Positions 6,540-61,320 of a DNA stretch of 64,000 nucleotides are shown one piece after another (the first letter of the stretch is position 1; each line of letters opens with the position of its first letter). The position numbers and the translations under genes are program-made. The notes under the pieces are model-generated. The model had not been told where the DNA came from. It worked only from the letters and a program-made list of their open reading frames with translations, and made no database searches. The DNA comes from Mytilus trossulus (lineage: Eukaryota), in assembly GCF_036588685.1 (NCBI RefSeq), contig NC_086375.1:47492001-47556000 (forward strand). The letters run 5' to 3'.

Positions 6540-6800
6540 ATATGTTAGTGAATAATACTTGTACTAGGATATAATGTTATACATAATAGCAACTATACTA
6601 AGAGACAATGAAATCAATAAAAACAATATCAATTACACACCACAAGCAGTGAAATGGTCATATAGGTAAAACTCCAGGGGGGGTAATATAATCACATATA
6701 CAAAATTTAAAACAATAGAATTGTCACTTTGCAGGAGATATTTTATCAAACAATAGAAGAGACGGAGCGATCAACTTGGGTTCTATAAAAGGCAGGCGAT
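6540..6800 (+). promoter_or_regulatory. Promoter of the + strand Rho-like gene
   Basis: CACACCACAAGCAGTGA, a G-run, two AAACAATAG motifs and TATAAAAG. Homologous in reverse complement to the upstream regions of the minus-strand copies. Confidence 0.65.
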
Positions 6801-6872
6801 TTTAAGCTTTCTTCATAACACATTTGTTGATTTTAAAACACTGTCGAAAATCAATCTTAGTATAGTTGAAAA

Positions 6873-7421
6873 ATGGTTTGCTACGAAAACACTGTTTCCT
6901 GTGCCGTTGTTGGTGATGGAATGGTAGGCAAGACATGCCTTGCTAAAAGATTTGCTGGAAACCAGTTCTCTGAACAATATGTTGCTACAGTTGCAGAAAC
7001 ATCGACTGGATCTGTGTCAGCTTATGGTGACAAGTATAAAGTCATCAGCTATGAAGATCAATCAGCTAGATCCAAAACAATAACAGAATCCGACGTCATT
7101 GTTGTATGCTACAGTGCAGTTGACAAAGAATCATTTGAAAACGTCAAATCCTTTTGGATTCCAATGGTCCGAAAACTCCATAAGAAGAAACCAATTGTTT
7201 TAGTCGCTACACATAGTGACATGCGTGATGACAATAATACCGATCATGTATCAGACGCTGAAGGACAAAACTTTATGAAATCAATTAATGCTGACTATTA
7301 CAACAAATGTTCTGCTGCTACAAATGAGGGAGTGAAGAATGTCTTCGAAAGTGTCGTCTGCGCCGCTATTAGATATAGAAAAAAGAAAACCAATGTGCTT
7401 AAACGTGTTTTCGCACGATGA
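6873..7421 (+). CDS. Atypical Rho/Rac/Cdc42-like small GTPase, intronless, 182 aa, lacking G3 (DxxGQ) and CAAX
   Basis: P-loop GDGMVGKT, switch I YVATV, DVIVVCYS/SFENV..W.P core, G4-like ATHSD, G5-like KCSA, polybasic tail. TATAAAAG at 6784-6791. Confidence 0.92.
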   Translation: MVCYENTVSCAVVGDGMVGKTCLAKRFAGNQFSEQYVATVAETSTGSVSAYGDKYKVISYEDQSARSKTITESDVIVVCYSAVDKESFENVKSFWIPMVRKLHKKKPIVLVATHSDMRDDNNTDHVSDAEGQNFMKSINADYYNKCSAATNEGVKNVFESVVCAAIRYRKKKTNVLKRVFAR

Positions 7422-7529: not shown

Positions 7530-7554
7530 GGAATGTACCACTGGTGTACATTCC
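7530..7554 (+). other. Conserved 3'UTR stem-loop GGAAUGUAC-CACUGGU-GUACAUUCC
   Basis: 9-bp stem. Copies at 37702-37726, 44020-44044, 46877-46901, 49840-49864, 52803-52827, and a variant at 2049-2078. Confidence 0.6.
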
Positions 7555-36845: not shown

Positions 36846-37835
36846 TATGTTATTTTGGTATCTTTCGAATTTGCTTTATTGTTCCCGCTTAATTTTTTTC
36901 ACGTTGTTTTTTTACTTTGATCTGAAGAAATAATTGTTTGTATTTTGTTTTTCTATTGTTGTATTTTGTTAACCATACTGTTTTGAATGTTCCCTTCGTA
37001 CCCTTTGCCTAGCTCTTTTTATTCCGAATACATACACATTTTACATAAACATATTACTCTATTTTAAAAACAATTAAGCTGCCGTGTGAACATTATGAAA
37101 AAGTCGATCTTGACTAGGAATTGATAAACCATTGTGACCACAAAGTTAACCAAAAACTCAACAACCTTTATTTGAATCGGTAATCTTTTGTGGTTTTTTG
37201 TTTGATTTTTTTTCTTGTTTATGAAGTATTCATGTTGTTATCTAATGATTTGTTTTTATTTGCGTTAACATCAAAGTGTGTTGCCCATTAACATTGATAT
37301 TTTGTTTCAATATGAATACTTATCATTGATTTTTATCAAAAAATTAACTGTCTGTAACAACCTTTTCGTGTCATTCCTTCAGTGTATTGTGAATACATAG
37401 CTAACAACATAAACATTTTTCATATAAGATAATTTATTTTCATAATATAAATCACTGTTATCATTTTACAATAATTAACAATAATAACTTTTGTCTTTTC
37501 ACCATTTAAGTTTTTTCTTTAAATTCATCATCTTGACTAATTTCATATTGTTTCTCAAAGAACTATTTCGTTTCTCTTTAAGTTCATACTGATGATTGAT
37601 TTCACATTGTTTTTGTAAGTTCGTGTCCTTGCCCATCACCGGCACTACTTATTCTCCATCTGAAATACTGTAACTCGACAGGAATATTTCAATCCATCGT
37701 AGGAATGTACACCAGTGGTACATTCCATCTCCAACTGCTTCTATCTCAAAGTCTTTTGACAGCAAAAGGTTTTGCTATTCTTAACACAAGATGTGTTTAG
37801 TAAATGTTTATCTCCGGGCAGAGATAAGTTCAAGT

Positions 37836-38384
37836 TCATCGTGCAAAAACACGTTTAAGCACATTGGTTTTCTTTTTTCTATATCTAATAGCGGCGCAGA
37901 CGACACTTTCGAAGACATTCTTAACTCCCTCATTTGTAGCAGCAGAACATTTGTTGTAATAGTCCGCATTAATTGATTTCATAAAGTTTTGTCCTTCAGC
38001 GTCTGATACATGATCAGTATTATTCTCATCACGCATCTCACTCTGTGTAGCCACTAAAACAATTGGTTTCTTCTTATGGAGTTTTCTGACCATTGGAACC
38101 CAAAAGGATTTGACGTTTTCAAATGATTCTTTGTCAACTGCACTGTAGCATACAACAATGACGTCAGCTTCTGTTATTGTTTTGCATCTTGCTGATTGAA
38201 TTTCGAAGATATTGACGCTGTATTTGTCACCGTAGGCAGACACGGACCCAGTTGTTGTTTCTGCAACCGTAGCAACATATTTGTCTGAGAATTGGCTTCC
38301 AGCAAATCTTTTAGCAAGACATGTCTTGCCTACCATTCCATCACCAACAACGGCACAGGAAACAGTGTTTTCGTAGCATACCAT
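37836..38384 (-). CDS. Atypical Rho-like small GTPase, intronless, 182 aa
   Basis: Near-identical paralogue of 6873-7421. The homologous ATG is at 38384 (the ORF track extends to an upstream TTG). G4-like motif is ATQSE. TATA box at 38466-38473. Confidence 0.92.
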   Translation of the reverse strand: MVCYENTVSCAVVGDGMVGKTCLAKRFAGSQFSDKYVATVAETTTGSVSAYGDKYSVNIFEIQSARCKTITEADVIVVCYSAVDKESFENVKSFWVPMVRKLHKKKPIVLVATQSEMRDENNTDHVSDAEGQNFMKSINADYYNKCSAATNEGVKNVFESVVCAAIRYRKKKTNVLKRVFAR

Positions 38385-41300
38385 TTTGTACAATTTCTGT
38401 TTTATACCTTCAAACGTGTAATATGTCAGTAGAAAAGTGTTATGCTAAATGAAAAATCTTTAGCCCTTTTATAGATCCCGAGTCGTTTGCCTGGGTAAAT
38501 CCATTGTTTATACAGATCTCCTACTAAGTGAAGATTCTATTGTTTAATCATGACAACCCTGTGTGATCAAATTTACCCCCAAGTGTTTCAACCTAGATAA
38601 CTCTCTCACTGCTTTGGGCTGAAATATGAAACTTTTTATTGTTTTATTTATAGCATTTTTCTCTTACAGTTTTAACAAAAAGGAAACATTTGTTTGTTAT
38701 CTTCATGTTATTGAATCTTGATTATGATGTTGTCTAGTTTTTCCTTGTTTTGATATTTGAAAGTTTGTTAACTCGATGCAGTTAGACATAGTAAATTGCC
38801 AGTTAGCAATATAGTAAGGAAAAGGGAAAAGACAAAACAGAATAATCATATAGTTTGAAAAACATAACAGACGTATTATTGATTAGTAAAACATAATCGG
38901 CACCAATTTGACTGCCCTTGGTTCACATTGCGACAATTACTGTCTCTGCAGTGATGCAAAATACAAAATATTTGTAAATCAAAAGCATATACAAAACGGG
39001 CCAACAGTAAAGCAAATATTTTTTATTCTAGTTTTTAAGTACATCAAAAGAAGTAATTTTACATGCCACATTCTTTTTTGAATTACGATATGTTGTCGAA
39101 AGTTAAATCCCTTGCAAACTAGGAGAAACTTATTACTTCATTTTTCATATAACAGTTTCCTTTCGTAAGATTTTTAATGGTTGTCCTGATGATCTATTGC
39201 TTACTATTGAAAACAGTAGATAATTTTCAGTGAATGAGTATTGCAAAGTATCTTTATTGTCAACTGGAATAGTTTCGAGATTAAAATTTGTATTATCAAA
39301 TGCACGAACAGTCAAGAAGGAAAAGAAATCATAACGATGAACTCTGGACAATTATGCATAAGCAACAAAGAAGCATTTTCTTCAAACAATATATTATTAT
39401 AAAAATGATGCCTCTTTTACTATAGGTGATACACATTTTTGCTTACACTTCAAACTTCGAGTGGGTATCTATTCATTATTTACTTGCCTTTGTTTTAAAT
39501 GATTGTATCAGGCACACAGAAAGCTATCAAATGGATTGTTTTGATTTTGAACAAAGAAACATATTCCCCACAGAGATATAACAATAGGTGTAACATGAAG
39601 CGACCTGGTGGTAATAATGTCAAAACAAGGAACATATTGCGATATTTACATGTAATGGAACTTGTTTTCCTCTGTATATAAAGCTTTGATACTTTGCTTT
39701 TTATAATACAAATTAAGTTTATCTAACTAGCTTGGATGAAAATTGTATGGAAATATTTGGATTAACAAGTGTATTTCTTGAAGTCTTGTGTGCATAATAA
39801 AAATGCTACGATGAATGCGGGGAAGTAAATAAAGTTTCATCAAGTTAATGTCGCTATGATTTGGATATAAAATAGCGAAAATGTTTAGAATTATTTACAT
39901 TAGAATGAAGAAATGCACAGTGCCGCAGTGATACTGTACACACATATTTTTTCCAACTGGATGTTATTCATTGATTTCCACATGACGTTATGACTTTATT
40001 AGCATATTCTATATATTTTATGGAAATATATCTAGTGCATTAAAAATTATTAATTTTTAATATTTATTACTAAGTATCTAGATTGTCAAATGTACATTTA
40101 TTCCTTTGTTCAGAGTAGCTTTTATTTTCCTTTTATTGCTGAAAGGTCGACGTTTATGATATCTCGAATTAAGTGTATGTGAACAGTGTACCTTAATAGA
40201 AATAGTCGTTTGTACACATTAGGATTTGGGATTCAATAGTGGAAACGACTCGTAATCAGAAAAAGCAAGAATTCATAACTGGATATCATCTGTTATTTGC
40301 TATTAAAAAAAAACCAATCAACTCTGTCATTGGACAAAAATATCACGTTGATTTAAAGGTGTTGCAAATGAAATCTAATACCGAATATATATGTTCTCAC
40401 ATCAAATGCAAAAAATAAATATTATATAATTTTTCTTGTTTTGCTGTTCAATATGTTTGTACTAGTTTGTTAATTTTATCCTTGATAAATGTCTATTTCA
40501 AATTTCCTACTACCTAAATATAGGGAAAACGGCAGTATTACATTTTCCCAGGATGAGGTTGGCCTTTTGTGTACCCAAGGCAGGTGAAGGAAGTCATATT
40601 AGGAGCGCTGTGACTGGATGTAATGGTACAATATATGTTTTTTTAGCTATGAATAGCTGCAGTGTGTATATTTGCAATCTAAATTTTGAAACCTATTGAA
40701 ATATTTTCTAGAGAATTATTCGAAAAGACTTTCAAAATTTCATAAATTTGTCGTAAACTGACGGTGGGCATGGATAACACAAACAAGCTCTGTTGTAAGT
40801 TGGTCATGATACTATTTTGCTTTAATTCTTAAAACATAAAAATACAGTACTAAGACCACGTATAACTGTTTTATCCAGGTTTTTATCATGAAAAGTGGTA
40901 AATTTAGAAAATGTTAATATTGCCGCCTATGGCAGAATAAATAGTACCGTTTTCCTTTTAACAATGGTAATATACCATTGTTCAAAATTTATTAATCGAT
41001 TTAACGGAAACAAATCCGGGTACCAAGTGCATTGTGCAAAGATGACAGTATAATAAATTGCATCATTAAATAAGTTCTTATGTCTATCGAACACTCTCTG
41101 GAGCTCTTTGGACATTTTTTGGTTATTGTCCCATGAGTCCTGGTTGTTTTAGTGATAATTAATTGCTAATGAGGCTTAGAATAAAGAACTTTTGGATTAA
41201 AGTTTAAATTTCGAAAGGTTGTATATTTTGACTGAATTTGTAAGTTGCTATCTAATGGACGTTTGTCCTATTTAATCTTTCCCTTTTATTCTTTTAATAA

Positions 41301-42469
41301 AATTCATACAGTTTAATCTACAAATATATACAATCGGGCCGTTTCTTTATTTCTTTAAAATGATTAATAATTTTGTTATACATGCTCATTTGTGTTTAGC
41401 TACCTAGATGTTACGAGTATACGTTATTTAAAGTGACAGAGAAATGTAGCAGCAGTAGTTTACTGATGTTGAGATCCAGTAAATCCATTTTGAATACACA
41501 AAAAAAGACATAAACAAAACTTAAGGGAAATTACATAAGACAAGTGCGTTCAGATGGATTAGTTCTGTAATGCAGGACTACTCTGAAATGTGAATCAGGA
41601 CTCAGTTAGAAACAATTCATAAAATAGAAAAGAATATGTCTAGCTATTTTAAAGATCACAGTATAATACTGCTTTTGAATTCAATACCGACAAAACATGT
41701 TCCTAGTTAGATGCAAAACATAGCAAATGATGACAACTTATATGATTTCTTGAAACGGATTGTAAAATCCTTTAAAAGTGATATGAACTCATTTCGTCTA
41801 CATTTTGCTGAGGTTTACTCTATAAAGTATCCAAAAATTAAGTTACTGAAAATCAGATAACCTAAGTTGAAGTTCCTTTTTTATGATTAAACTTATATTA
41901 AGAGTAACATATATGAAGAAGTTTAGCATCATATCATGACCTTCTTCATTTAACAAACTTAATCGATGAAAAAAAGATATCTTTTCCATGTTATCTTTCT
42001 ATATTAAGTAGCAATAAAGTCAGTATCTATACTGCAAATTTTATTGTTTCATTTAAAATAAACTTAAATGGCGTATGTTTCCTAAAAACGTTTTAAATGG
42101 CAATGATAGAGGGCTACTGCTACTTTAAAAAAGAGAGGACATTGCTAACGAAAGATATTTTTTTATTTTTCGAAGCTGTTATCCGGTAAATTTTCTTGCA
42201 TTATATATTATGACCTCCTATCGTATACAACATGTACCATACGTGAAGAATGAGCTAAGTATATATGAAAGCCTTAAAGTGTTTATGTTGATAAATCTTT
42301 GGTTGTCTGAGTGTCATTTCTAAACTGCCGGTGTTTTCTTTCTAAACTCAAGTATGTTCTTTTTATTGCTAGCTTATTTTTTGTTTCTTTCTTTCTTTTT
42401 TCTTTCTTATTTCTTTGAAGATTAAAGGTGAAAACCATATTGAAAGGTTGAGATATGACTATGAACATC

Positions 42470-42730
42470 TTGTCAATACTAGAACTAGCACTTGTATTGT
42501 CTACAGTTTAATTATATAATACTAAAAGTAAACAAAAATGTCGACTATACACAGAAAACAATGAAATAAATCAAACGATATCAATTTACACACCACAAGC
42601 AGTGAAACGGTCATATAGGTAGAACTCCAGGGGTCTTTTATGATCATATACATGTTAATTTATAAACAATAGAATTTTCACTTTGCAGGAGATATTTTTC
42701 AAACAATAAAAGAAACAGAGCGATTAACCT
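42470..42730 (+). promoter_or_regulatory. Orphan copy of the + strand Rho promoter, no gene downstream
   Basis: Aligns by eye with 6550-6775 (caccacaagcagtgaaa..ggtcatataggta.aactccagggg..aaacaatagaatt.tcactttgcaggagatatttt). TATA segment absent. Confidence 0.7.
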
Positions 42731-44153
42731 AAATTTAGATACTCAACGTTATGATTTCAGTTTTGCAAAACATAGAATTTTTTTTTTCGTTGTGCCATAT
42801 ACATATCAGTCGAAATTAATGTTTAATGGCTTCTGAAGCGGTTTTGTCCACAACAATTCAACATGATTTTAATAGACCCATTCACTTTTATTTGACCTGA
42901 TAAATGTAAGATAAGATGACAGCATACTTATGTCTATGTCATTAGAGTATCATCAGGTGAGCACAGACAGACGAAGGACTGGTATAAGTCGGATAAATAT
43001 AACCTGAGATCATCTCCATTATTTGATGTATTTTTTTTCAATTTAGTGTCTTGTTTTCTGTGTATTCTTTAGTTAAGTGTTTTTTCATTGTTGTATTAAA
43101 ATCACAAAAAAAAAATTCCGAGGAAAATTCAAAACGGACAATCTTAAATCAAATAGTATAATTAAAAGATAAAACATATGAAACGAATGGATAACAACTG
43201 TAATATTCCTGACTTGGTACACACATTTTTGTATGTAGAAAATTGTGGATTGAACCTGGTTTTATAGCTTGCTAAACCTCTCACTTTTATAACAGTCGCA
43301 TCAAATAATGAGAGTTTAATACACCTTCTGTATCTTCTTCATCTGTATTTTTTCTGATATATAAACATTTGACGTGTGCTGGATGTGAACTGAGTAATTT
43401 ATTCACACATTAAAACAACTAGTGGATCTCGTCTTTAATAACAGAGAACACCTAAGCTAACCATAACCTGAATTGTTTTTGTTTTATTATATTGGGTTTT
43501 GAATATTGCATGTTTTTCGTGTTTTTTGTTATGCCCTCCGATCGTTTTGAAGTAGTTGTATCCCATTATACGTTTTTAATTGCTTTTGGATAAAAACAAA
43601 AACAAAAAACAAAGATTTTCCCATTAACATTGATGTTTTGTTTCAATATGAAAACATTTCAATGATTTTCGTCCAAAATGTTACTGACTGTAATAACCTT
43701 TACATGTCATCCCTTTCAATGTATTATGAGTATATAGCAAACAAAATAAATATTTTTCATATAAGATTTATTTTCATAATATAAATCACTGTTATCATTT
43801 CACAATAATTAACAAAAATAATTTGTGTCTTTTCACCACTTCAGTTTTTTCTTCAAATTCATCATCATGACTAATTTGATATTGTTTTTCAATGAATTAA
43901 GTTCAAATTGATTTCATATTGTTTTTGTAAGTTCGTGTCCTTGCCAATCACCGGCACTACTTTTTCTCCATCTCCATCTCAATTACTGTAATTCGACAGC
44001 AGCATTTCAATCGATCGTAGGAATGTACACCAGTGGTACATTGCATCTCCAACTCCTTCTATCTCAAAGTCTTTTGATAGCAAAAGGGTTTGTTATTCTT
44101 AGCACAAGATGTGTTTAGTAAATGTTTATCTCCGGGCAGAGATAAGTTCAGGT

Positions 44154-44702
44154 TCATCGTGCAAAAACACGTTTAAGCACATTGGTTTTCTTTTTCCTAT
44201 ATCTAATTGCGGCGCAGACGACACTTTCGAAGACATTCTTTACTCCTTCATTTGTAACAGCAGAACATTTGTTGTAATAATCAGCATTAATTGATTTCAT
44301 AAAGTTTTGTCCTTCAGCGTCTGATACATGATCAGTATTATTCTCATCACGCATGTCACTATGTGTAGCGACTAAAACAATTGGTTTCTTCTTATGGAGC
44401 TTTCTGACCATTGGAATCCAAAAGGATTTGACGTTTTCAAATGATTCTTTGTCAACTGCACTGTAGCATACAACAATGACGTCAGCTTCTGTTATTGTTT
44501 TGCATCTTGCTGATTGATCTTCATAGATATTGACGCTGTATTTGTCACCGTAAGCAGATACAGAACCAGTGGATGTTTCTGCAACCGTAGCAACATATGT
44601 GTCTGAGAATTGGCTTCCAGCAAATCTTTTAGCAAGGCATGTCTTGCCTACCATTCCTTCACCAACAACGGCACAGGAAACAGTGTTTTCGTAGCATACC
44701 AT
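44154..44702 (-). CDS. Atypical Rho-like small GTPase, intronless, 182 aa
   Basis: Paralogue with P-loop variant GEGMVGKT. ATG at 44702. TATA box at 44784-44791. Confidence 0.92.
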   Translation of the reverse strand: MVCYENTVSCAVVGEGMVGKTCLAKRFAGSQFSDTYVATVAETSTGSVSAYGDKYSVNIYEDQSARCKTITEADVIVVCYSAVDKESFENVKSFWIPMVRKLHKKKPIVLVATHSDMRDENNTDHVSDAEGQNFMKSINADYYNKCSAVTNEGVKNVFESVVCAAIRYRKKKTNVLKRVFAR

Positions 44703-45599
44703 TTTGTACAATTTCTGATTAAAATCTTGAAACGTGTTCTTAGTCAGTAAAAAAGTGTTATGCCAAATGTAAAATCTTCAGTCCTTTTATAGATCCCGAG
44801 TTGCTTGCCTGGATAAATCCATTGTTCATAAAGATCTCCTACTAAGTGAAGATTCTATTGTTTATAAATGACAACCTTGTGTGATCAAATTCACCCCCAA
44901 GTGTTTCAACCTAGATTACTCTCTCACTGCTTGGGGCTGAAATATGAAACTTTTTATTGTTTTATTTTTAGCACTTTTTTATTGCAATTTTAGCTAAAAG
45001 GAAACAATTCTTTTTTAAACTCTTGATATTGAACATTATGATTTTGTTTCGTTTTATTTGTTTTGATATTTGATAGCTCGTAAATTCGATGCAGAAAAAT
45101 AACATAGTACATTATGCAATATATTACGGGAAAATGGTGGTACTTTTAAAAAAGTACATTGTTGACGACAAATATATACTTTTTTTTTGCCATGATCTCA
45201 TATATTTTCCTACATTGGTGACTTATGATTACCGAAATATGGTGTGCAACACGACATGTGGAAAACATGCAGCAGGAACTCGTTTACCTTAGAATTATGA
45301 TAATTTTATAAATCTTTAGGGTTACCTGACAGTTTGCTTAACTGTCGCTATCTTTTTTTTATCTTTCTAAAACCATGAGTAAAAACATAAGGTTTTTATT
45401 GCTCACTTGCTATTTCCTAAATCTATTGTTAGTGTTGTTCTATTGATAACTTAATACTGTTAACATAGATAATATTTTTTTAGAATTTACTATGAATATA
45501 ATAATGAGGACTTTTCTTGATTCTTGAATCTGTTTTTTTCATTGTGTTTGTTTTTCTGATAACTTATATTAAACGTATTGTACAACATGGTTTAATGGT

Positions 45600-45800
45600 C
45601 ACTTCCGCACAACTAACAATGAAATTAATAAGACAATATAAATTTGCACACCAGCAGCGGTGATATGGTACAAAGGTGCAACTCCAGGGGGCTAATATAA
45701 TCACATACATGCAAATTTATAAACAGTAGAATGTCACTTTGCAGGAGATATTTTTCAAACAATAGAAGCAATAGAGCGATCCACCTATGTTCTGTAAAAG
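45600..45800 (+). promoter_or_regulatory. Orphan promoter copy with mutated TATA
   Basis: Homologous to 6600-6795; gttctgtaaaag replaces gttctataaaag. Confidence 0.65.
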
Positions 45801-47013
45801 TTATCCAGCTGAAAATTTCTCACAACATATTTGTTGTTCTAACGCTTTTTTATGTAACAATTTTATTTTCTTTGTAATTTTGATACAGAACATTATGATT
45901 TCAGTTTCCAAAATATCGAATTTTCTATATCTGAGTGGCATAAAACCTAAAATTGGTCGCTTATATAGAGATTTTGTCTTCAACAGAGACTTTATGATTT
46001 GGAATAGGCATCTTTACTAATATTTGAAGTATTCCATTAACGATAGAAGTATCCAAACAACCAGGTTGGCACAGAAAGATGAATGACTGATATAAGTAAG
46101 ATAGGCATAACTCGAAATGATCCATGTTTTGGTGCAGTTTGTGTTGCTCAGTCTTTTTTTTTCTAAGTAATTCTTTGATGACTTGTTTGCCTTTGTGTCG
46201 TTAATTGTTTTTAACCATGACAATGTCAGCCTCTTAAGTGTTAAATATCCGCCTCGCATCTTCTATCTCTTTTTGGTTATGTCTAATACATGAACATTTG
46301 TCATATGTGTTGAAACAAATTGGAAGATTTTATGTGTTGAAAATGTACAGAACAAATAAATTGAACGTTATAAAACGAGTGGACACTGACCGGGAATTGC
46401 TTAACTAGTTGGAACACAAACATTTAAAGAATTTTTTTCCGCAACCTTTATTTTACTTTGTGATTTTTTATGTTCTTTATTTTGTTTTTTCATCTTTTTG
46501 TATGAGTGTTCATTGTGTTGTACCCAGTAACATTATTGCTTTGTTTCAATCGGTATACTTTCCATCGATTTGTATCAAAAGCTGACTGACTGTAAGAACG
46601 GTTACACTTCATCCCTTCAGTTTATCATAAGTAAATGGTTAACAAAACAAATCATTTTCATGTAAGATAATTTATTCAAACAACATAAATTAAAGTAATA
46701 CAATAATATACAAGTATTGTTTGTGTTTTTTCACCATATAGTTTTTTCTCTTTAAGTTCATCATCGTAATTAATTTCACATTGTTTTTGTACGTTTCTTG
46801 TCCTTGAACATCACCGGCACTACTTCAACTCCGTCTCAATCACTGTTATTCGACAGCAGTATTTTAATCCGTCTTTGGAATGTACACCAGTGGTACATTC
46901 CATCTCTAACTCCTTCTATCTTAAAGTCTTTTGACAGCAAGAATTTTGCTATTTTGACACATTTCAAAATGTGTAAAGTATAGGTTTATCTCCGGGCAGA
47001 GATAAGTTCAAGT

Positions 47014-47562
47014 TCATCGTGCGAAAACACGTTTAAGCACATTGGTTTTCTTTTTTCTATATCTAATAGCGGCGCAGACGACACTTTCGAAGACATTCTT
47101 CACTCCCTCATTTGTAGCTGCAGAACATTTGTTGTAATAGTCAGCGTTAATTGATTTCATAAAGTTTTGTCCTTCAGCATCTGATACATGATCGGTATTA
47201 TTCTCATCCCGCATGTCACTATGTGTAGCGACTAAAACAATTGGTTTCTTCTTATGGAGCTTTCTGACCATTGTAATCCAAAAGGATTTGACGTTTTCAA
47301 ATGATTCTTTGTCAACGGCACTGTAGCATACGACAATGACGTCAGCTTCTGTTATTGTTTTGCATCTTGCTGATTGATCTTCATAGATATTGACGCTGTA
47401 TTTGTCACCGTAAGCAGATACATAACCAGTGGATGTTTCTGCAACTGTAGCAACATATTTGTCTGAGAATTGGCTTCCAGCAAATCTTTTAGCAAGGCAT
47501 GTCTTGCCTACCATTCCATCACCAACAACGGCACAGGAAACAGTGTTCTCGTAGCAAACCAT
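47014..47562 (-). CDS. Atypical Rho-like small GTPase, intronless, 182 aa
   Basis: Intact ORF, paralogue of the above. TATA box at 47643-47650. Confidence 0.92.
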   Translation of the reverse strand: MVCYENTVSCAVVGDGMVGKTCLAKRFAGSQFSDKYVATVAETSTGYVSAYGDKYSVNIYEDQSARCKTITEADVIVVCYSAVDKESFENVKSFWITMVRKLHKKKPIVLVATHSDMRDENNTDHVSDAEGQNFMKSINADYYNKCSAATNEGVKNVFESVVCAAIRYRKKKTNVLKRVFAR

Positions 47563-48489
47563 GTTTTCAATTTCTGTTTAAAATCTTTAAACGTGTAATA
47601 AGTCAGTAGAAAAGTGATATGCCAAATGTAAAATCTTCAGCCCTTTTATAGATCCCAAGTCGTTTGCCTGGGTAAATCCATTGTTCATAAAGATATCCTA
47701 CTAAGTGAAGATTCTATTGTTTATAAATGACAACCCTGTGTGATCAAATTTACCCCCAAGTGTTATAACCTTGATAACTCTTTCACTGCTTGTGGCTGAA
47801 ATATGAAACCTAGTATTGTTGTATATTTTTAGCAATATATTATTGCAATTGTAGCTAAAAGGAAGCAATTTTTTGTCATTACCCGTTATGATTTTGTCTC
47901 GTTTTTTTTAATTTGTTTTGATATTTGATAGTTTGTAAATTCGATGCAGAAAAACAACATAGTACATACATGATATTGGAACAATTGTGGTACTTTAAGA
48001 ACATAATACATTGTTGACGACAGATATACTCTATTTTTTGTAGCCATGATCCCATATATTTCCTGCATTGGTGACTTATAATTATTTATATATAGTGTGC
48101 AATACAACATGCGGAATGTGTGAAGCAGGAACTCGTTTACCTTAGAATTATGATTGTTTTATAAATCTTTAGGTTATCTGAGTTTTTGTTAAACCACCGC
48201 TATTTTTTATCTTTCTAAAATCATGTATACAAGCATATGAATTTAACTTCTCACTTGCTTTTTCTTAATTCTATTTCTCGTGTTGTTCTTTGAATTACTT
48301 GGGACTGTTGATTATAAATATTTTGAGAACTTCCTATAAATATCTTAATGTGTTTTTTTCTTGTTTCATGAATCTGTCTTTCCGTTGTGAATGTTATTCT
48401 GATAATTTAATTAACATATTGTGCAACATGGTTTAACAGAAATAATATGAACTTAGAAGAAAGTTTAAAAAGACAGAATTTCGATTTGT

Positions 48490-48765
48490 TTGTCAAAATT
48501 TGTATTAGTACTTAGATTATCTTCATTGTAAGAATATGATACTAAAAGTAAACAAAATAATTGCTTACACACAATTTACAACGAAATAAATGAAACAATA
48601 TCAATTTACACAACACAAGCAGTGAAATGGTCATATAAATAGAACTCCAGGGGGCTAATACAAGCACATACATATGAATTTATAGACAATAGAATTGTCA
48701 CTTAGCAGGAGATATTTGTCAAACAATAGAAGCAATAGAGCAATCAACCTATGTTCAGTAAAGAG
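48490..48765 (+). promoter_or_regulatory. Orphan promoter copy with mutated TATA
   Basis: Homologous to 6550-6795; gttcagtaaagagc at the TATA position. Confidence 0.65.
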
Positions 48766-49976
48766 CATCCAGTTTAAAATTTCTCACACAATACTTGTCG
48801 TCCTAATTAATTTTTTGTAACATTTTATTTTCATTGAAATCTTGATACATCACATTATGATTTCAGTTTCCAAACTTAAAATTTTCTATTTCGAAGTGAC
48901 ATATGGCTATCGGTCAAAATTAAAGTATGGTTGCTTCTAAGGAGGTTTTGTCCACAATAAAGATTTCATGATTTTGAACAGGCAACTTCACTGATTCTGA
49001 CTTCAAGATAAGATGAAAGTATGCCAACGACAATAGAAGTATCTCTAGAACCATGTTGGTACAGAAAGATGAAGGACTGATATAAGTGGGTAGACTTAAC
49101 TCGAGATGACCCATTCTTTTGGACGAGTATGTGTTGCTCGGTTTTTTTTCTATGTAATTCTTGGGTGACTTGTTTGCTTTTTTCTCGTTAATTATGTTTA
49201 GCCATGACAATTCCAGTTTATTAAGTGTTTAATATCCGCTCCGCATCTTCCATCTCTTTTTGGTTATGTCTAATACATGACAATTTATAATATGTGTTGA
49301 TAATGTACAAAACAAATATATCGAACGCTATCAAACGATTGGCCATTGACCGGGAATTGCTTTACCAATTGGAGCACAATCATTTTAAACATTTTATCCG
49401 CAACCTTTATTTTACTTTGTGATTTTTTATGTTCTTTATTTTATTTTTTCATCTTTTTGTATGAGTGTTCATTGTGTTGTACCCAGTAACATTACTGCTT
49501 TGTTTCAATCGGTATACTTTCCATCGATTTGTACCAAAAGCTGACTGACTGTGTAAGAACGGTTACATATCATCCCTTCAGTATATCATAAGTAAATGGT
49601 TAACAGAACAAATATTTTTTATGTAATATAATTTATTCTTACAACATAAATTAAAGTTATACAATAATATACAAGTTTTGTTTGTGTCTTTTCACCATAT
49701 AAGTTTTTGTTCTCTTTAAGTTCATCATCGTTATTAATGTCACATTGTTTTTGTCAGTGTTTGTCCTTGCCCATCACAGGAACTACTTCATCTCCATTTC
49801 AATCACAGTAATACGACAGCAGTATTTCGATTCGTCTTTGGAATGTACACCAGTGGTACATTCTATCTCCAACTCCGTCTATCTCAAAGTCTTTTGACAG
49901 CAAGTATTTTGCTATTTTGGCACATTTTAAAATGTGTAAAGTATAGGTATATCTCCGGGCAGAGATAAGTTCAAGT

Positions 49977-50525
49977 TCATCGTGCAAAAACACGTTTAAG
50001 CACATTGGTTTTCTTTTTTCTATGTCTAATAGCGGCGCAGACGACACTTTCGAAAACATTCTTTACTCCTTCGTTTGTAGCTGCAGAACATTTGTTGTAA
50101 TAGTCAGCATTTATTGATTTCATAAAGTTTTGTCCTTCAGCATCTGATACATGATCGGTATTATTCTCATCACGCATGTCACTCTGTGTAGCGACTAAAA
50201 CAATTGGTTTCTTCTTATGGAGCTTTCTTACCATTGGAATCCAAAACGATTTGACGTTTTCAAATGATTCTTTGTCAACTGCACTGTAGCATACGACAAT
50301 GACGTCAGCTTCTGTTATTGTTTTGCATCTTGCTGATTGATCTTCATAGATATTGACGCTGTATTTGTCACCGTAGGCAGATACGGACCCAGTTGTTGTT
50401 TCTGCAACCGTAGCAACATATTTGTCTGAGAATTGGCTTCCAGCAAATCTTTTAGCAAGACATGTCTTGCCTACTATTCCATCACCAACAATGGCACAGG
50501 AAACAGTGTTCTCGTAGCAAACCAT
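49977..50525 (-). CDS. Atypical Rho-like small GTPase, intronless, 182 aa
   Basis: Intact ORF with P-loop GDGIVGKT. TATA box at ~50606-50613. Confidence 0.92.
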   Translation of the reverse strand: MVCYENTVSCAIVGDGIVGKTCLAKRFAGSQFSDKYVATVAETTTGSVSAYGDKYSVNIYEDQSARCKTITEADVIVVCYSAVDKESFENVKSFWIPMVRKLHKKKPIVLVATQSDMRDENNTDHVSDAEGQNFMKSINADYYNKCSAATNEGVKNVFESVVCAAIRHRKKKTNVLKRVFAR

Positions 50526-51459
50526 GTTTTCAATTTCTGATTTAAATCTTTAAATGTGTAATAAGTCAGTAGAAAAGTGTTATGCCAAATGTAAAATTGT
50601 CAGCCTTTTTATAGATCCCGAGTCGTTTGCCTCGGTAAATCCATTGTTCAAAGAGATCTCCTACGAAGTGAAGATTCTTTTGTTTATAAATGACAACCCT
50701 GTGTGATCAAATTTACCCCCAAGTGTTTCAACCTTGATAACTCTTTCACTGCTTGTGGCTGAAATATGAAACTTATTATTGTTGTATATTTTTAGCAATA
50801 TGTTATTGCAATTGTAGCTGAAAGGAAACAATTCTTTGTTATTGAACACTATGATTTTGTCTCATTTTTTTGAATTGTTTTGATATTTGATAGTTCGTAA
50901 ATTCGATGCAGAAAAACAACATAGTACATACATGATAGAGGGAAAATGGTTGTACTTTTAGAAAATAGTACATTGTTGACCACAGATATACTCTACTTTT
51001 GTAGCCATGATCCCATATATTTCCTGCATTGGTGACTTATAAATATTTATATAAAGTGTGCAATACAACATGCGGAATGTGTGAAGCAGGAACTCGTTTA
51101 CCTTAGAATTATGCTTTTTTTATATAAATCTTAAGGTTATCTGAGTTTTTGTTAAACCATCGCTATTTTTTACCTTTCTAAAACCATGTTTACAAACATA
51201 TGATTTTGACTGCTCACTTGCTTTTTCCTAATTCTATTTCTCGTGTTGTTTTTTGAATTACTTAGAACTGTTAACATTGATTATAAATTTTGAGAACTTA
51301 CTATGAATACCTTAATGTGGACTTTTCTTGTTTCTTCAATCTGTATTCCCATTGTGTATTTTATTCTGATACTTATATTTAACAGATTGTACAACATGGT
51401 GTAACAGAAATAGTATGTACTTAGCAGAAAGTTCAAAAAGACAGATTTTTTATTTTTTT

Positions 51460-51735
51460 GTCAATACTTGTACTAGTACTTAAATTGTCTTCATTGTAAG
51501 TATATGATACTAGAAGTAAACAAAATTATTATTTACACACAACTAACAACTAAATAAATCAAACGATATCAATTTACACACCACAAGCAGTGAAATGGTC
51601 ATAAAGGTAGAACTCCAGGGGGCTAATACAATCACATACATATGAACTTATAGACAATAGAATTGTCACTTAGTAGGAGATATTTGTCAAACAATAGAAG
51701 CAATAGAGCGATCAACCTATGTTCTGTAGAAGGCA
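51460..51735 (+). promoter_or_regulatory. Orphan promoter copy with mutated TATA
   Basis: Homologous to 6550-6795; gttctgtagaaggc at the TATA position. Confidence 0.65.
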
Positions 51736-52940
51736 TCCAGTAGAAAATGTCTAAAAAAAATTTGTCGTTCTAATTCATTTTTTGTAACATTTTATTTTCA
51801 TTGAAATTTTGATACATCACATTATGATTTCAGTTTGCAAACTTCAAATTTTCTATTTCGGAGTGACATATGGCTATCGGTCAAAATTAAAGTATGGTTG
51901 CTTCTAAGAAGGTTTTGTCCTCAATAAATATTTCATGATTTTGAACAGGCAACATCACTGATTCTAACTTCAAGATAAGATGAAAGTATACCAATGAAGA
52001 TAGAAGTATCTCTAAAACCATGTTGGTACAGAACGATAAAGGACTTATAAGTGGGATAGACTTAACTCGAGATGACCCATTCTTTTGGAGGAGTATGTGT
52101 TGCTCGTTTTTTTCCTATGTAATTCTTTGATGACTTGTTTGCCTTTTTGTCGTTAATTGTTTTTAGAAATGACAATGCCAGTTTCTGAAGTGTTAAATAT
52201 CCGCTTCGCATCTTCTATCTCTTTTTGGTTATGCCTAATACATGAACATTTGTCATGGGTGTTGAAAAAAATGCAAGATTTGATAATGTACAGAACAAAT
52301 AAATCGAACGTTATAAAACGAGTGGATATAGACCGGGAATTGCTTAACCATTTGAAACATTTTATCAGCAACCTTTATTTTACTTCGTGATTTTTTATGT
52401 ACTTTGTTTTCGTTTTTTTCATCTTTTTGAGTTTTCATTGTGTTGTACCCAGTAACTTCGTTGTTTTGTTTCAATCGGCATGTTTTTCTTCGATTTTTAT
52501 CAAAAACTTACTGACTGTAAGAACGGTAACATGTCATCCCTTCAGTATATCAAAAGTAAAATGGTTAACAAAACAAATCATTTTCATGTAAGATAATTTA
52601 TTCAAACAACATAAATTAATGTAATACAATAGTATACAAGTATTGTTTGTGTCTTTTCAACATATAAATTTTTTCTCTTTAAGTTCATCATCGTAATTAA
52701 TTTCACATTGTTTTTGTAAGTTTGTGTCCTTGAACATCACCAGAACCACTTGTTCTCCATCTCAATCACTGAAATTCGACAGGAATATTTCAATCCGTCT
52801 TTGGAATGTACACCAGTGGTACATTCCACCTCCAACTACATCTATCTCAAAGTCTTTTTACAACAGGTATTTTGCTATTTTTGACACATTTTAAGATGTG
52901 TAAAGTATAGGTTTATCTCCGGGCAGAGATAAGTTCAAGT

Positions 52941-53489
52941 TCATCGTGCAAATACACGTTTAAGTACATTGGTTTTCTTTTTTCTGTATCTAATAGCGGC
53001 ACAGACGACACTTTCGAAGACATTCTTTACTCCTTCATTTGTAGCAGCAGAACATTTGTTGTAATAGTCAGCATTAATTGATTTCATAAAGTTTTGTCCT
53101 TCAGCGTCTGATACATGGTCAGTATTATTCTCTTCACGCATGTCACTATGTGTAGCGACCAAAACAATTGGTTTCTTCTTATTTATTTTTCTGACCATTG
53201 GAATCCAATATGATTTGACGTTTTCAAATGATTCTTTGTCAACTGCGCTGTAGCACACAACAATGACGTCAGATTCTGTTATTGTTTTGGATCTAGCTGA
53301 TTGATCTTCATAGCTGATGACGCTGTACTTGTCACCATAAGCAGACACAGATCCAGTTGATGTTTCTGCAACTGTAGCAACATATTGTTCAGCGAACTGG
53401 CTTCCAGCAAATCTTTTAGTAAGGCATGTTTTGCCTACCATTCCATCACCAACAACGGCACAGGAAACAGTGTTCTCGTTACAAACCAT
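52941..53489 (-). CDS. Atypical Rho-like small GTPase, intronless, 182 aa
   Basis: Intact ORF. TATA box at 53574-53581. Promoter is more diverged than in the other copies. Confidence 0.92.
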   Translation of the reverse strand: MVCNENTVSCAVVGDGMVGKTCLTKRFAGSQFAEQYVATVAETSTGSVSAYGDKYSVISYEDQSARSKTITESDVIVVCYSAVDKESFENVKSYWIPMVRKINKKKPIVLVATHSDMREENNTDHVSDAEGQNFMKSINADYYNKCSAATNEGVKNVFESVVCAAIRYRKKKTNVLKRVFAR

Positions 53490-56400
53490 TTTCGTAGTTT
53501 TTTTAAGTCTTTAAATGTGTTACGAGTATTTAAAGTAGATATTCGTTATGAGAGAAAGTTACAATTTCTGTCCCTTTTATAGATCGTTTGTTTTTCGGTC
53601 GGATTCGCCCATTGTTCTTCAAATCTCCTGCAAAGAAACAATGCTTTTGTTTTTTCTTGCACACTGGTGGTATCAAGTTTACCCCCTGGAGTCACTACGT
53701 ATATGTCCAAATCACTCTATGTGGTAGGAAAAGGAAAGTATTTTGAAAATTTGTTAATGTTTACTTTTCGATAGTCGAGTTTTCCACAGACATAACAGTA
53801 ATACAATACGGCGTTGGAGGAGAACAACATTTTGTTTATACAGTTTTGTCTTTTTGAATTTCGTATGAATTGTTGTTTTGAAATAGAACAACTCACATGA
53901 ATATCATGCTGTCTTGATTTTTGCAGTTTGTAATCATGTATGATAAAGTTATACCCTTAAAGTAAACTTTCTGTGTAATTCCTCCTTTCCCTTTCAATAC
54001 TTTCTACCTTGCTTGCACGGCAGCATTTTTATGAAACCATTAAGTCTTGTGAATGTTGTTGTCTTCTTTACCCTACTTGTTTATATAATTTTCGATGATT
54101 GTATAATTTTATCTGTCTTTTTCAAATTAGTAAAGGTTAATGTTTTTTTACTCATTTTTAACAAACACGCCTTTCCGTGCAGACAGTGTATGTTGTTGAA
54201 CATATGAAGGAATTCATATCTGATAAAAGAAGAAGTCTGAAATAAGTTCAAATATGCTTGCATATTAAGCACAATGATGTTCATACGATTAAATATTCGT
54301 TTGTGTCAAACAAACGGGTACAATATTTAATGCTAATGAATGCCATTTAGTTTTGCAAATTTCACTTCATTTTCTGCATAAATGTGTTTTCAGTTAACAT
54401 AGAAAACCTCTATATAAGGTAGAAGATAATGCAAACTCAGATATAATTTACATGTTATATGGTATATATTTGTGTAAATAGAATGCACGTTTTTTTGTGG
54501 ATTCTCATTATATGACAGTCCACTGTCTGAACTTTAAGGGAATTTCTACTGATACTATATGTCGAAGATAGTCCAAATGGGGTTATTGAATTGTTTTACC
54601 ATCAAAATATATCGCATTTCTCGTTTCCTTTTTTTACAATTAGATATAAACAGACCAACAGAGAGTTTCGTAGCTGAAAACAAAAGGTGTATTCGCTTGA
54701 TTAGAAAACAATGCGTATACCTACTGATTGACTCAAGGTGGTAAATATCTCGCTGGTAATGCTGGTAGGGGTTGTAATATTATCTAGTGTTTCATTTTTG
54801 AAAACTACAGGGGGTTAATGTACATATATACTGTATTTGTTTGTGCTCTATCATTTTTATTCTGTAAATGGACTAGCGATGATTCTTTGTGGATATTCAG
54901 TGCAATATTCAGTGTTTTGCTAAATTATAGTTTTGGTTTTAGTATACTTTGGAATAATACAAGTGGAACTATTTGGTGTTTTCTTAAATCCAACAGTATT
55001 CATGGATTATAATAGATTTATCAATATCATATAATTTTTTTTAAAACTAGTGATGGTTTTGTGTTCATACAATCGTAATTAGATTCAGGTGGATGTAAAA
55101 GAAGTTTGATGAGCAAGTGTTGATGACTTTTATGTATTCTACCAAACAAATATCATTGGATTATACCAAAAACATATCAATGGATTACATTTCAAACATT
55201 GCATAATGCATTGCAGTTGAAAACTGTTTGGTTATTCTATTTGACTCTTTGGTCTCCCTAATGTTATCTACTGTAACAATATTTCCTAAAGTTTGTATAT
55301 ACTTTTATAAGAAGTATATAACTATGGTAATAAATATATTGAAAACATGTTCCTCTATTTCAGACTTAATTTTTAAATTGTTCTTTCTTTTGCAAATGAT
55401 TTATTAATAATGTTAAAAATACTTTACTAAACATCGGTTTCCATCTTATTAATAAGATTGATTGCACACTTTCATGCATACTGCAATTGATTTGTTAGAT
55501 AAGAGGCATCGGTGTTGTGTTTTTTTTCTGGTGGTGATGCAAGCTATGGTTAGACTCAGGGTGTCTTTTTGAGAGAAGTAATTATTTGCAAAGGCGACAA
55601 TAGTAGCATTTTGTGTCCGTGTTTTCATGGTTAGAAGAAATCGGTCGACAAAAAGACATATTCTGAGTTTTCAACACCTTTGGTTTTGAATACATTTGAA
55701 TAAGCATAAGGTGCCACTGCTATTTTTACGTAACATTGCCTTTTTATGATATTGTGAGACTCCGGGTGGTTTTCTGTATAAACGAAAATAAGAAAACGAA
55801 ATTTCGAAATGCAAAATAAAAATTAAGGTCAAAAGCAAACAATTTGCAAGGTAAGGTCACATTAACAGTTGAACATTGAAGAATAGTAGTATATTGATTT
55901 TTAAATGTCATATTCCTTTGCTGGGGACATTTAACTTAAGTATTTAAATTATTATGAGAAAAGATTTTAAACTTTTTAATTAGACAGATTTCGCTAAAAG
56001 ACTCTTTGTTGAATTCGTAAAATTAAGTAAATTTTCACTAAATAAAATACAATACCGTCAAATTGACATACCCCATACCAAGTATAAACAGTAATATTGT
56101 AAATGGCCTTGTCCTTATTGTGCTACATAAATCCGATATTGTTGTCAGAACTTTATATTCGAAATAGTTGCAAAATATTATTTTAATGTAATTCAGACAA
56201 GTTAGTACAAGGTATTAATCGTATTTGGTCTTGGATTGCAAATATATCGTTAGGAAAACCTGAAAAATATTACTGTGACTATTTAGGGCTCTTGCTTTGA
56301 TATCACATCGTATGTTAATACGGATTATATATATTCCAGGAAATGATAATATAGCACCTATTCGTGGTCTTGATCTTGATCTACCTATTTAGTCGACTCT

Positions 56401-59797: not shown

Positions 59798-61320
59798 TCA
59801 TTTACCCATGAGTGTATGAAGAAGACTCGAGCGACGCCTTCTTTTAGACTTTATAACTGAAAGTAAAATATCTTCGAATAATTCATCTACTTCTTCTTTG
59901 TTATCAGATCTACATTCGATGTACGCATCAAATTTGTGAGATTCCATTATATCAAGTCCTTCTTGTTTAGATACATTGTTATGTTCGTCCCTGGTGTCTT
60001 TGTATGTGGCAACTAATACCACTGGCGTTTTCTTGCATAGGTTTCTAATTTCCGGAATCCAGAATGACTTGACATTTTCAAAGGATTCTCTGTCGGATAC
60101 ACTATAACACAAGATAAATACATTGGCTTCTTTGTAGGACTTTGTTCTAACCTCCTTGTAGTCATGCTGAAAAATAAAACAAAATACACCATAAGTAATT
60201 TAATCTATTTGTGGGGCTACTGTGCATGCTCTAAGCATTTAAAATGAGCAAGAGCAAAGACCGGTTGGCCGGAAGTCAGAATTATGTGTCCGGGAAGGGT
60301 AACATATTTTCCTGCAGACTGTCAACATCGTCCATGAACTAGAACGTTAAAAAGCCGTCTTGGCGTGTCAGTCTCATACAAAGCAGGTTTAATAATTATG
60401 CTACATACATATTAACATGTTCTAGTCCTGAATATGCATATAATTTGCAACATGTTGTTAAACAGTCATCCGTCATCATTAGTTGCAAATTTGATTATCG
60501 ATTGTGATACGCTTTATGATTTGTCATTAATTCGTTTTGCAATAATTTTTTTGTTCATTTGAAAACAAAAGACAGACACCATACATTCATTTGAATATCT
60601 TACATATAAGAAGAAAAATATCATTATGTAACAATATTAAACATTCCTTTTAAATATTACTTTCATGCTTAAACTAATATAAAAATTAGGAGATGTGGTT
60701 TAATTGTCTATGATACAACTATCCACCAGAGTAAAAATGAAGCGGTAAAAAGCAATTGTAGGTCACCGTAAGCTTATTATAAAATCTATAGCACTTATAT
60801 AAAATATACTAAGAGGATGTGATATGATTGCCTTTGAGACAACTCTCCACAAGAGACCAAACGATACAGAAATAAACAGCTATAATGGGTCACAGTGTGG
60901 ACTTCAACAATGAGAAAAGCCTTTACCTCATAGTCAGCTAAAAAAAGGCCCATTTGTCAAAAAAATCGAATAATTTGTTTTAAACACTAACCTGGCCAGA
61001 TGAAATAAACAACTATAGGGCACAGTATGTGTTTCAACAATGAGCAAAGCCCATACCGCAGAGTCAGATAAAAAGGGCCCATCTTCCAATACAATAAAAT
61101 GATTTGTTTAAACACTAACCTGGCCAGATGAGTCTACTATTTTGATGATATAATCTGAACCCATCATGTAAGTCGGTACAGTGTATAAATCAGAAACTGT
61201 TGCTGTATAGTCGTCTGATGTTTGACTTCCGGCAAATGTTTTACAAATTTGAGTCTTTCCTACCATCCCATCTCCTACAATAGGGCACATAACAGTTTTA
61301 TCGTTCTCGTGGGTTAGCAT
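59798..61320 (-). CDS. Rho-like small GTPase, two exons (61120-61320; 59798-60166), 189 aa, G3 retained (DSSGQ), no CAAX
   Basis: Exon 1 ...GDGMVGKT...IVDSSGQ|gttagt. Acceptor tttcag|CAT at 60166. Exon 2 HDYKEVRTKSYKEANVFILCYSVSDRESFENVKSFWIPEI...KSKRRRRSSLLHTLMGK*. Same phase-0 intron position as the pseudogene. Confidence 0.9.
60865..61131. repeat. ~130-bp tandem duplication spanning the exon 1 donor of the G3-retaining GTPase
   Basis: taaacactaacctggccagatga occurs at 60981-61003 and 61109-61131, each preceded by the same repeat-derived sequence. Confidence 0.75.

Follow-up and report, generated by a model that had tools for sequence, protein, structure and literature searches.

A tandem array of small GTPase-like genes lies in a 64,000-nucleotide (nt) stretch of the genome of the mussel Mytilus trossulus (contig NC_086375.1, positions 47,492,001 to 47,556,000; this whole stretch is hereafter the window, and positions are counted from its first letter). 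The encoded proteins resemble Cdc42 and other Rho proteins and have lost most of the G3 motif, DxxG(Q). We favour, with moderate confidence, the view that the array is functional and that its Cdc42/Rho-like products are nucleotide-bound, hydrolysis-dead, non-cycling adaptors controlled by their abundance. Taken together, the analyses suggest that they are probably permanent GTPase look-alikes, which do not cycle and whose output is set by the amount made. In canonical small GTPases, Gly60 of the G3 motif detects the gamma-phosphate and Gln61 holds the catalytic water in place; in the two-spring description of the switch, Thr35 and Gly60 are the two residues that sense the gamma-phosphate.

The open reading frame (ORF) listing of the window contains six intronless ORFs, each of 549 nt and 182 amino acids (aa) without stop or frameshift, at the places claimed in an earlier note on this DNA. 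They are c6873 (6873-7421, plus strand; S67/S73 type, sister of c52941) and, on the minus strand, c37836 (37836-38384; the most derived copy, with FEIQSAR and TQSE as its G4), c44154 (44154-44702; P-loop GEGMVGKT), c47014 (47014-47562; the reference copy for the Pfam and PDB searches and for the AlphaFold2 model), c49977 (49977-50525; G4 TQSD) and c52941 (52941-53489; N4/T24/S67/S73 type). The six proteins are 92-97% identical, four of the six copies follow a tandem period of ~2.9 kb, and all six carry the junction motif KY(S/K)V(NI/IS)(Y/F)E(D/I)QSAR as the earlier note had read it. A search of the 1.3-Gb M. trossulus genome found no further full-length intact intronless copy (the counts being lower bounds), and the amplification looks local. 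Uncollapsed haplotypes were rejected as the origin of the copies on three grounds: the synonymous divergence (dS) of 0.14-0.36, the 2.9-kb tandem period, and the four to five consecutively numbered genes in the annotations of other species.

By similarity the proteins are Cdc42/Rho-like, and they lack two classical Rho features. The Pfam Ras model (PF00071) matches c47014 at E 8e-27 (94.2 bits, the gathering score being 21.6), the 60 best sequence matches in the PDB are all Cdc42, TC10, Rac or plant ROP (best E ~1e-25), and the top Foldseek matches all belong to the Rho family (RhoA, RhoB, Cdc42 and Rac; template modelling (TM) score ~0.8). The label "Rho" used in the earlier note thus holds for the closest relatives in sequence and structure and does not extend to the Rho insert or the CAAX box. 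The insert is mostly missing (a 9-residue gap relative to Cdc42, residues 114-127 being modelled as a loop with no helix), and every copy ends in ...KRVFAR with no Cys near the C-terminus, which is a conserved polybasic helix (RYRKKKTNVLKRVFAR).

Among the G motifs, the G1 P-loop is present as GDGMVGKT, with G14, G16, G19, K20 and T21 invariant in 28 array proteins from five species. The G2 Thr is likewise present and invariant (T39 in YVATV, equivalent to T35 of Cdc42). G4 reads THSD in four copies, TQSD in c49977 and TQSE in c37836, its Asp being kept in five of the six, and the G5 motif KCSAAT aligns with ECSALT of Cdc42. The elements that had been listed as retained (GDGMVGKT, YVATV, a G4-like T(H/Q)SD and CSA) are present, c37836 departing from the third with TQSE. 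When three array copies are aligned with canonical bivalve relatives, 21 columns are invariant, including G14, D15, G16, G19, K20, T21, T39, D116, C146 and S147; the singleton exceptions, D15E in c44154 and D116E in c37836, lie in copies outside that alignment. G3 is different: NIYE/DQSAR stands in place of DxxG(Q), and xxGQ is absent. HMMER aligns "niye....dqs..ar" with the Cdc42 segment "lfdtagqedydrlr", placing Glu61 at the Asp57 position at the end of beta3, followed by gaps of 4 aa and 2 aa, so that the acidic residue, which had been counted among the losses, is in fact kept. Switch I is altered (YVATVAETSTG, against YVPTVFDNYA in Cdc42), and the switch II region is unrecognisable (DQSARCKTITEA). 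The proteins are pseudoGTPases in the sense of a G-domain fold with at least one G motif lost; as for the loss of Gly12 and/or Gln61 that is typical of RhoH and Rnd, Gln61 is absent and Gly12 present. Copy c37836 combines FEIQSAR (Asp62 to Ile) with Glu for the guanine-specificity Asp (TQSE), and may be drifting away from guanine binding.

The structure prediction of the beta3/switch II region that the earlier note had proposed returned a preserved G domain with a shortened loop and alpha2. The AlphaFold2 model of c47014, built on a 22-sequence alignment, is confident in the G domain (predicted local distance difference test 82, predicted TM score 0.81) and places beta3 at 53-62, a 3-residue loop, a short alpha2 at 66-72 and beta4 at 75-81; in a control model of the subfamily-A paralogue, which has DTNGQ, the loop is longer and alpha2 spans 10 residues (69-78). 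On this prediction, the shortening of switch II leaves the G-domain fold whole.

The history of the loss can be read from three syntenic subfamilies, A, B and C, whose genes are consecutively numbered in M. edulis, M. galloprovincialis and M. coruscus. Subfamily A is one two-exon gene of 188 aa that keeps KDTNGQ/HED, subfamily B one two-exon gene of 184 aa with NI(H/N)E/HEEKSTR, a pseudogene in M. trossulus, and subfamily C is the array. At the junction, the DNA reads AAG GAT ACA AAT GGT CAG/gt...ag/CAT GAA GAT in A, AAT GAG/gt...ag/CAT GAA GAA in B and TAT GAA GAT in the array. What had been described as a clean 6-residue deletion of DxxGQ is therefore a net loss of six residues, as claimed, in two events and not one, a loss of 4 aa followed by one of 2 aa (HE), each at the former junction of exons 1 and 2. 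The first event, in which exon 1 lost 12 nt in frame from its 3' end (TNGQ or DTNG), is common to B and C; the second, a 6-nt loss (HE) at the start of the old exon 2, is confined to the M. edulis complex, and a GAA repeat flanks the deletion. The loss of G3 is old, since dS between the array and the two-exon G3-less copy (B versus C) is ~0.7, with a ratio of nonsynonymous to synonymous divergence (dN/dS, or omega) of 0.14-0.20. The intron of the array copies was evidently lost in place, because homology with the two-exon copy extends more than 300 nt upstream of the ATG and through the TATA box; the same upstream homology to the two-exon pseudogene, TATA box included, ruled out the array as a retrogene at a new site. 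The 6-nt (HE) deletion at codons 61-62 (e.g., 47377-47382) occurs in all array copies of the M. edulis complex (M. trossulus, M. edulis and M. galloprovincialis), although copy lineages marked by N4/T24 or S67/S73 are shared between these copies and the 184-aa ones of M. californianus and M. coruscus; the deletion may therefore have spread among paralogues by gene conversion.

The copies are under strong purifying selection. Pairwise Nei-Gojobori dN/dS among them is 0.08-0.18 at dS of 0.14-0.36, and the divergence of the flanks, where these can be aligned, is comparable to dS. Three near-independent pairs, compared by path-independent pairwise counts, show 54 synonymous and 28 non-synonymous differences on 116 and 430 sites, respectively (binomial p 6e-18). 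The contrast between intact ORFs and indel-rich flanks, pointed out in the earlier note, is borne out: every pair has 0 indels in the 549-nt coding sequence (CDS), against 8-14 events per kb in the downstream flanks, and ~5-8 CDS indels would be expected per pair at the flank rate. Neutral evolution and absence of expression were the outcomes that the note had set against its own reading; the dN/dS check that it had called for speaks for constraint. The variation that exists among the copies clusters in the alpha1/switch-I flank, at residues 24-35 and 44.

Retention is also seen across species, G3-less arrays being annotated in five Mytilus species. The proteins have 184 aa and the motif NIYE(H/L/N)EDQSAR in M. 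californianus and M. coruscus, and 182 aa in the M. edulis complex, with NIYEDQSAR in M. edulis, M. galloprovincialis and M. trossulus; xxGQ is absent from the array genes of M. edulis, M. galloprovincialis and M. coruscus and from further M. californianus copies. In a protein tree, individual copies group across species: for example, c6873 falls with M. galloprovincialis P0052 and M. edulis P0003, and three M. californianus-M. coruscus pairs are seen as well. The separate copies therefore date from before speciation and have persisted since. The array proteins bear the database name "cdc42 homolog", and a literature search, including one by accession number, found no paper describing these genes or their deletion.

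As for expression, the data are contigs (Logan) of four runs from four studies and three organisms, the runs being guessed to be RNA. The contigs cover the ORFs and reach ~270 nt beyond them on the downstream side and at least 17-30 nt on the upstream side. The covered intervals are 44000-44650, 46743-47579 and 49705-49999, where word depths are tens to hundreds; coverage is at or near zero in the spacers at 44800-46600 and 47600-49700, which serve as a silent control within the window. Since ORFs and untranslated regions (UTRs) are covered and spacers empty, the pattern is that expected of transcripts and not of genomic DNA; the finding is thus the opposite of silent copies, insofar as the runs are RNA. 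The deletion junction of c44154 is spanned by zero-mismatch contigs and that of c47014 by a contig with five mismatches, and a loose end in run X2 matches the 5'UTR of c52941 (30/30 exact); on this basis, transcription appears to extend to at least three copy types. An adapter-tagged contig end near 46733 suggests where the c47014 transcript stops, giving a 3'UTR of ~280 nt. A contig of run X8 joins the c47014 3'UTR (46949) to that of c44154 (44094), 2856 nt back, i.e., one array period, and most likely reflects the chimeric assembly of paralogues and not a real transcript.

From these data the following mechanism can be proposed. In-frame deletions at the old exon junction removed the switch-II loop with Gly60 and Gln61. 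Guanine nucleotide would still be bound, through the P-loop, the Mg/phosphate-binding Thr residues, the acidic residue 57, T(H/Q)SD and CSA, while hydrolysis would not take place and the nucleotide state would be uncoupled from switch II. The products would then be constitutive, non-cycling Rho-like adaptors, as RhoH and Rnd are, and the amount made would determine their output, by way of the number of tandem copies and of a compact TATA-box transcription unit that has no intron. Any contact with membranes would have to use the polybasic C-terminal helix, because there is no CAAX box. Nucleotide binding, the loss of hydrolysis, abundance control and the membrane route are all steps that we infer. 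Several points weigh against this proposal. That nucleotide stays bound when Gly60 and the switch-II loop are gone is an assumption, and the dosage-dependent role, which the earlier note had also suggested, is one that we infer from knowledge of the motifs. The whole protein is highly conserved, so that conservation of the P-loop only weakly singles out nucleotide binding as the constrained function. Copy c37836 has Glu for the G4 Asp, and four copies have His for the Gln of Cdc42 TQxD. Lastly, the expression evidence comes from contigs of runs that are only guessed to be RNA.

The best surviving alternative, which we nevertheless consider unlikely, is that the proteins are class i pseudoGTPases, binding no nucleotide and serving purely as scaffolds for protein-protein interaction, like CENP-M, the pG domains of p190RhoGAP and the psGD of AAGAB (class definitions partly after PMC12490416). 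PseudoGTPases with an intact fold are documented (PMC12490416), and the missing G3 and the changed switch I (YVATVAETSTG for YVPTVFDNYA of Cdc42) would suit such a role. The known examples have, however, lost most G motifs, whereas here G1, the G2 Thr, G4 and G5 persist over a dS of at least ~0.7 and in five species.

A little less probable is a working switch with a single "spring", in which the state would be read by the switch-I Thr alone and hydrolysis would be provided in trans by a dedicated GTPase-activating protein (GAP). RapGAP supplies hydrolysis for Rap, which lacks Gln61, and the array proteins keep the switch-I Thr, the P-loop Thr, the acidic residue 57 and, unlike RhoH and Rnd, Gly12. 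Against this, the proteins lack Gly60 and all of the flexible switch-II loop, and their alpha2 is predicted to be shortened. Switch II is the main docking surface for Rho guanine nucleotide exchange factors (GEFs), GAPs and guanine nucleotide dissociation inhibitor (GDI), and that surface is unrecognisable here (DQSARCKTITEA); moreover, no GDI cycle is possible, because the CAAX box is missing. We give the same low probability to a bolder statement, namely that these could be the first natural small GTPases to work without the switch-II sensing loop, either as nucleotide-locked "one-spring" proteins or as amplified decoys or guards against Rho-modifying bacterial toxins in a filter-feeder that is constantly exposed to Vibrio, with the stepwise shortening (-4, then -6 aa) driven by selection and not by drift.

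Doubtful to a slightly greater degree, and compatible with the abundance-controlled adaptors preferred here, is a role as immune decoys or guards, in which abundant non-signalling Rho look-alikes would absorb or report bacterial toxins that modify Rho GTPases, amplification being the product of an arms race. The tandem, lineage-specific amplification, the retained equivalent of the toxin target Thr35, the polybasic tail and the concentration of among-copy variation in the alpha1/switch-I flank (residues 24-35 and 44) would all fit. On the other hand, dN/dS is uniformly low (0.08-0.18), no diversifying selection is seen at the available resolution, and the copies are kept as orthologues across species and do not turn over fast. 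By far the weakest alternative, that the copies are neutral, recently duplicated dead genes with frames open by chance or gene conversion, could appeal to the homogenisation of tandem arrays by gene conversion and to the pseudogene next door (2174-2939), but it is rejected by the selection, expression and cross-species data: omega is ~0.1 at dS of 0.14-0.36 (p 6e-18), CDS indels number 0 against ~5-8 expected per pair, transcription is apparent, intact orthologous arrays exist in five species, and gene conversion is unable to reduce dN relative to dS.

The transcription units share a promoter element and a 3'UTR element. The TATA box of c47014, GATCTATAAAAGG, lies at 47642-47654 on the minus strand, ~80-90 nt upstream of the ATG. 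Equivalent sites are at 6780-6792 on the plus strand and at 38465-38477, 44783-44795, 50605-50617 and 53573-53585 on the minus strand, with one at the pseudogene (3016-3028, minus strand). The sequence has exactly 7 matches in the window, against 0.11 expected by chance, and each lies upstream of one of the six copies or of the pseudogene. The description "short, intronless, TATA-driven" is therefore correct as to anatomy (549-nt intronless ORFs with a conserved TATA box at each copy). Two types of promoter/5'UTR can be distinguished, as those of c6873 (6723-6880, plus strand) and c52941 (53482-53639, minus strand) differ from the other four outside the TATA core; these two sister copies stand at either end of the array and are oppositely oriented. 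The existence of two promoter types hints at a regulatory sub-division. In the 3'UTR of c47014, ~110-135 nt after the stop codon, there is a hairpin, GGAATGTACCACTGGTGTACATTCC (46877-46901, minus strand), and its counterparts are found at 7530-7554 (plus strand) and at 37702-37726, 44020-44044, 49840-49864 and 52803-52827 (minus strand). It consists of 25 nt with a stem of 9-10 bp and is near-invariant in 3'UTR sequence that otherwise diverges by 8-14%. These six are its only sites in the 1.3-Gb genome, and a version with two mismatches follows the pseudogene (2054-2074). An Rfam scan of 36000-62000 gave no match, so the hairpin is outside the known RNA families; it may be an element of post-transcriptional control.

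The neighbouring genes include the linked paralogue to which the earlier note had compared the array, with YIIKI-VDSSGQ-HDYKEVR. It is present as a two-exon gene that keeps DSSGQ (59798-61320, minus strand; exon 1 61120-61320, exon 2 59798-60166) and reads ...YIIKIVDSSGQ / HDYKEVR..., the intron directly following the GQ codons. The seventh family member is the two-exon G3-less pseudogene of subfamily B, in the -4 aa form, at 2174-2939 on the minus strand (exon 1 2757-2939; intron 2546-2756, with GAG/GTAAAT...TTTCAG/CAT; exon 2 2174-2545). It reads NINE / HEEKSTR, xxGQ being already gone, and its exon 2 is interrupted by two nonsense codons, a TGA and a TAA; the annotations of M. galloprovincialis, M. 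edulis and M. coruscus give its orthologues as intact proteins of 184 aa. Its inactivation in M. trossulus looks recent, because omega against the array is still 0.14-0.20. The intact two-exon, 188-aa subfamily-A gene lies ~0.3-1 kb to the left of window position 1 (C3:47491006-47491710, loci L008/L015). It keeps KDTNGQ/HED and has an altered switch I (YVATVAESYTG) in common with the array, and the switch-I changes therefore predate the loss of G3. An in-frame TAG that had been suspected in this DTNGQ neighbour turned out to be outside the coding frame, exon 2 being open to the terminal stop. The wider cluster of two-exon paralogues spans C3:47.34-47.61 Mb, with DxxGQ in most of them and DCSCQ in one, located in the region C3:47463601-47463954 (L017). 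This is a degenerate G3 in the same chromosomal cluster, and decay of G3 seems, to judge from the motifs, to recur within it.

The rarity of the deletion was surveyed among 89 single-domain representatives (50%-identity clusters) of the 150 best hits in a library of 1.8 billion proteins. DxxG is kept in 72 of the 89, and a substituted G3 is found in about ten complete proteins, such as the Haliotis "cdc42 homolog", in which FDNSAE is conserved in four abalone species, and an Argopecten irradians protein with FDCSSK. A deletion at this place is seen in only two of the representatives, the Mytilus cluster (-6 aa) and a Rac1-like protein of an acoel (-3 aa). Bivalve relatives at ~40% identity (Mercenaria, Mya, Sinanodonta, Potamilus and scallops) keep DSAGQ, DTAGQ or DSAGE, and oyster relatives at ~43% identity are among the representatives with canonical DxxG. 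In these alignments, decay of G3 is recurrent in the mollusc family and its outright deletion rare, and the deletion-type array appears restricted so far to the genus Mytilus. This mollusc-wide CAAX-less Cdc42-like family is omitted from the bivalve Rho catalogue (PMC4669188).

In the array, evolution has removed the second spring and the catalytic Gln and has kept the remaining G domain in multiple copies, at omega ~0.1 and genus-wide, which offers a natural experiment on the abilities of a P-loop G domain that lacks switch II. The array adds a deletion-type member to the list of pseudoGTPases and atypical Rho proteins, which are mostly substitution types, and draws attention to a CAAX-less Cdc42-like family, found across the molluscs, that databases label just "cdc42 homolog". 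For mussel biology, it is a compact, TATA-box-bearing, multi-copy locus.

Among known systems, the output of RhoH and Rnd is thought to be set by expression level and not by a GEF/GAP cycle (PMC13236570). The array proteins resemble RhoH and Rnd1-3, which are atypical, GTPase-deficient and constitutively GTP-bound, in having a Rho-like G domain and, as predicted from the motifs, a disabled hydrolysis apparatus. The difference is that RhoH and Rnd carry substitutions of Gly12/Gln61 in a full-length DxxG and switch II and possess the Rho insert and a CAAX box, while in the array proteins Gly12 is kept, xxGQ is physically deleted, the insert is 9 residues shorter and the CAAX box is missing. The RGK proteins (Rad, Gem and Rem) have a non-canonical G3, retain nucleotide-binding motifs, lack a CAAX box and end in a basic C-terminus, all of which the array proteins share; but the G3 of RGK proteins is substituted at normal length (DxWE), and they have long N- and C-terminal extensions and belong to the Ras branch, whereas the array belongs to the Cdc42/Rac-like branch. 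In the dominant-negative Ras G60A, loss of the switch-II glycine uncouples GTP binding from conformational change, and this glycine is also absent from the array proteins. G60A is, however, a point mutant made in the laboratory, whose switch II is intact apart from the mutation and serves to trap GEFs, and such trapping is unlikely in the array proteins because their switch II is truncated and divergent. With the class i domains (CENP-M, pG1 and pG2 of p190RhoGAP, psGD of AAGAB) they would have in common a fold that is kept and a catalytic switch function that is lost (PMC12490416), but those domains retain few or none of the G motifs and do not bind nucleotide, whereas the array proteins are without G3 only. 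They are also like their CAAX-less Cdc42-like relatives with a substituted G3 in molluscs, which share the GDGMVGKT P-loop, the short insert, the basic C-terminal helix and the loss of Gly60 and/or Gln61; in these relatives the changes are point substitutions in a full-length loop (FDNSAE, FDCSSK, the scallop DSAGE and the DCSCQ paralogue), whereas in the array the residues have been deleted.

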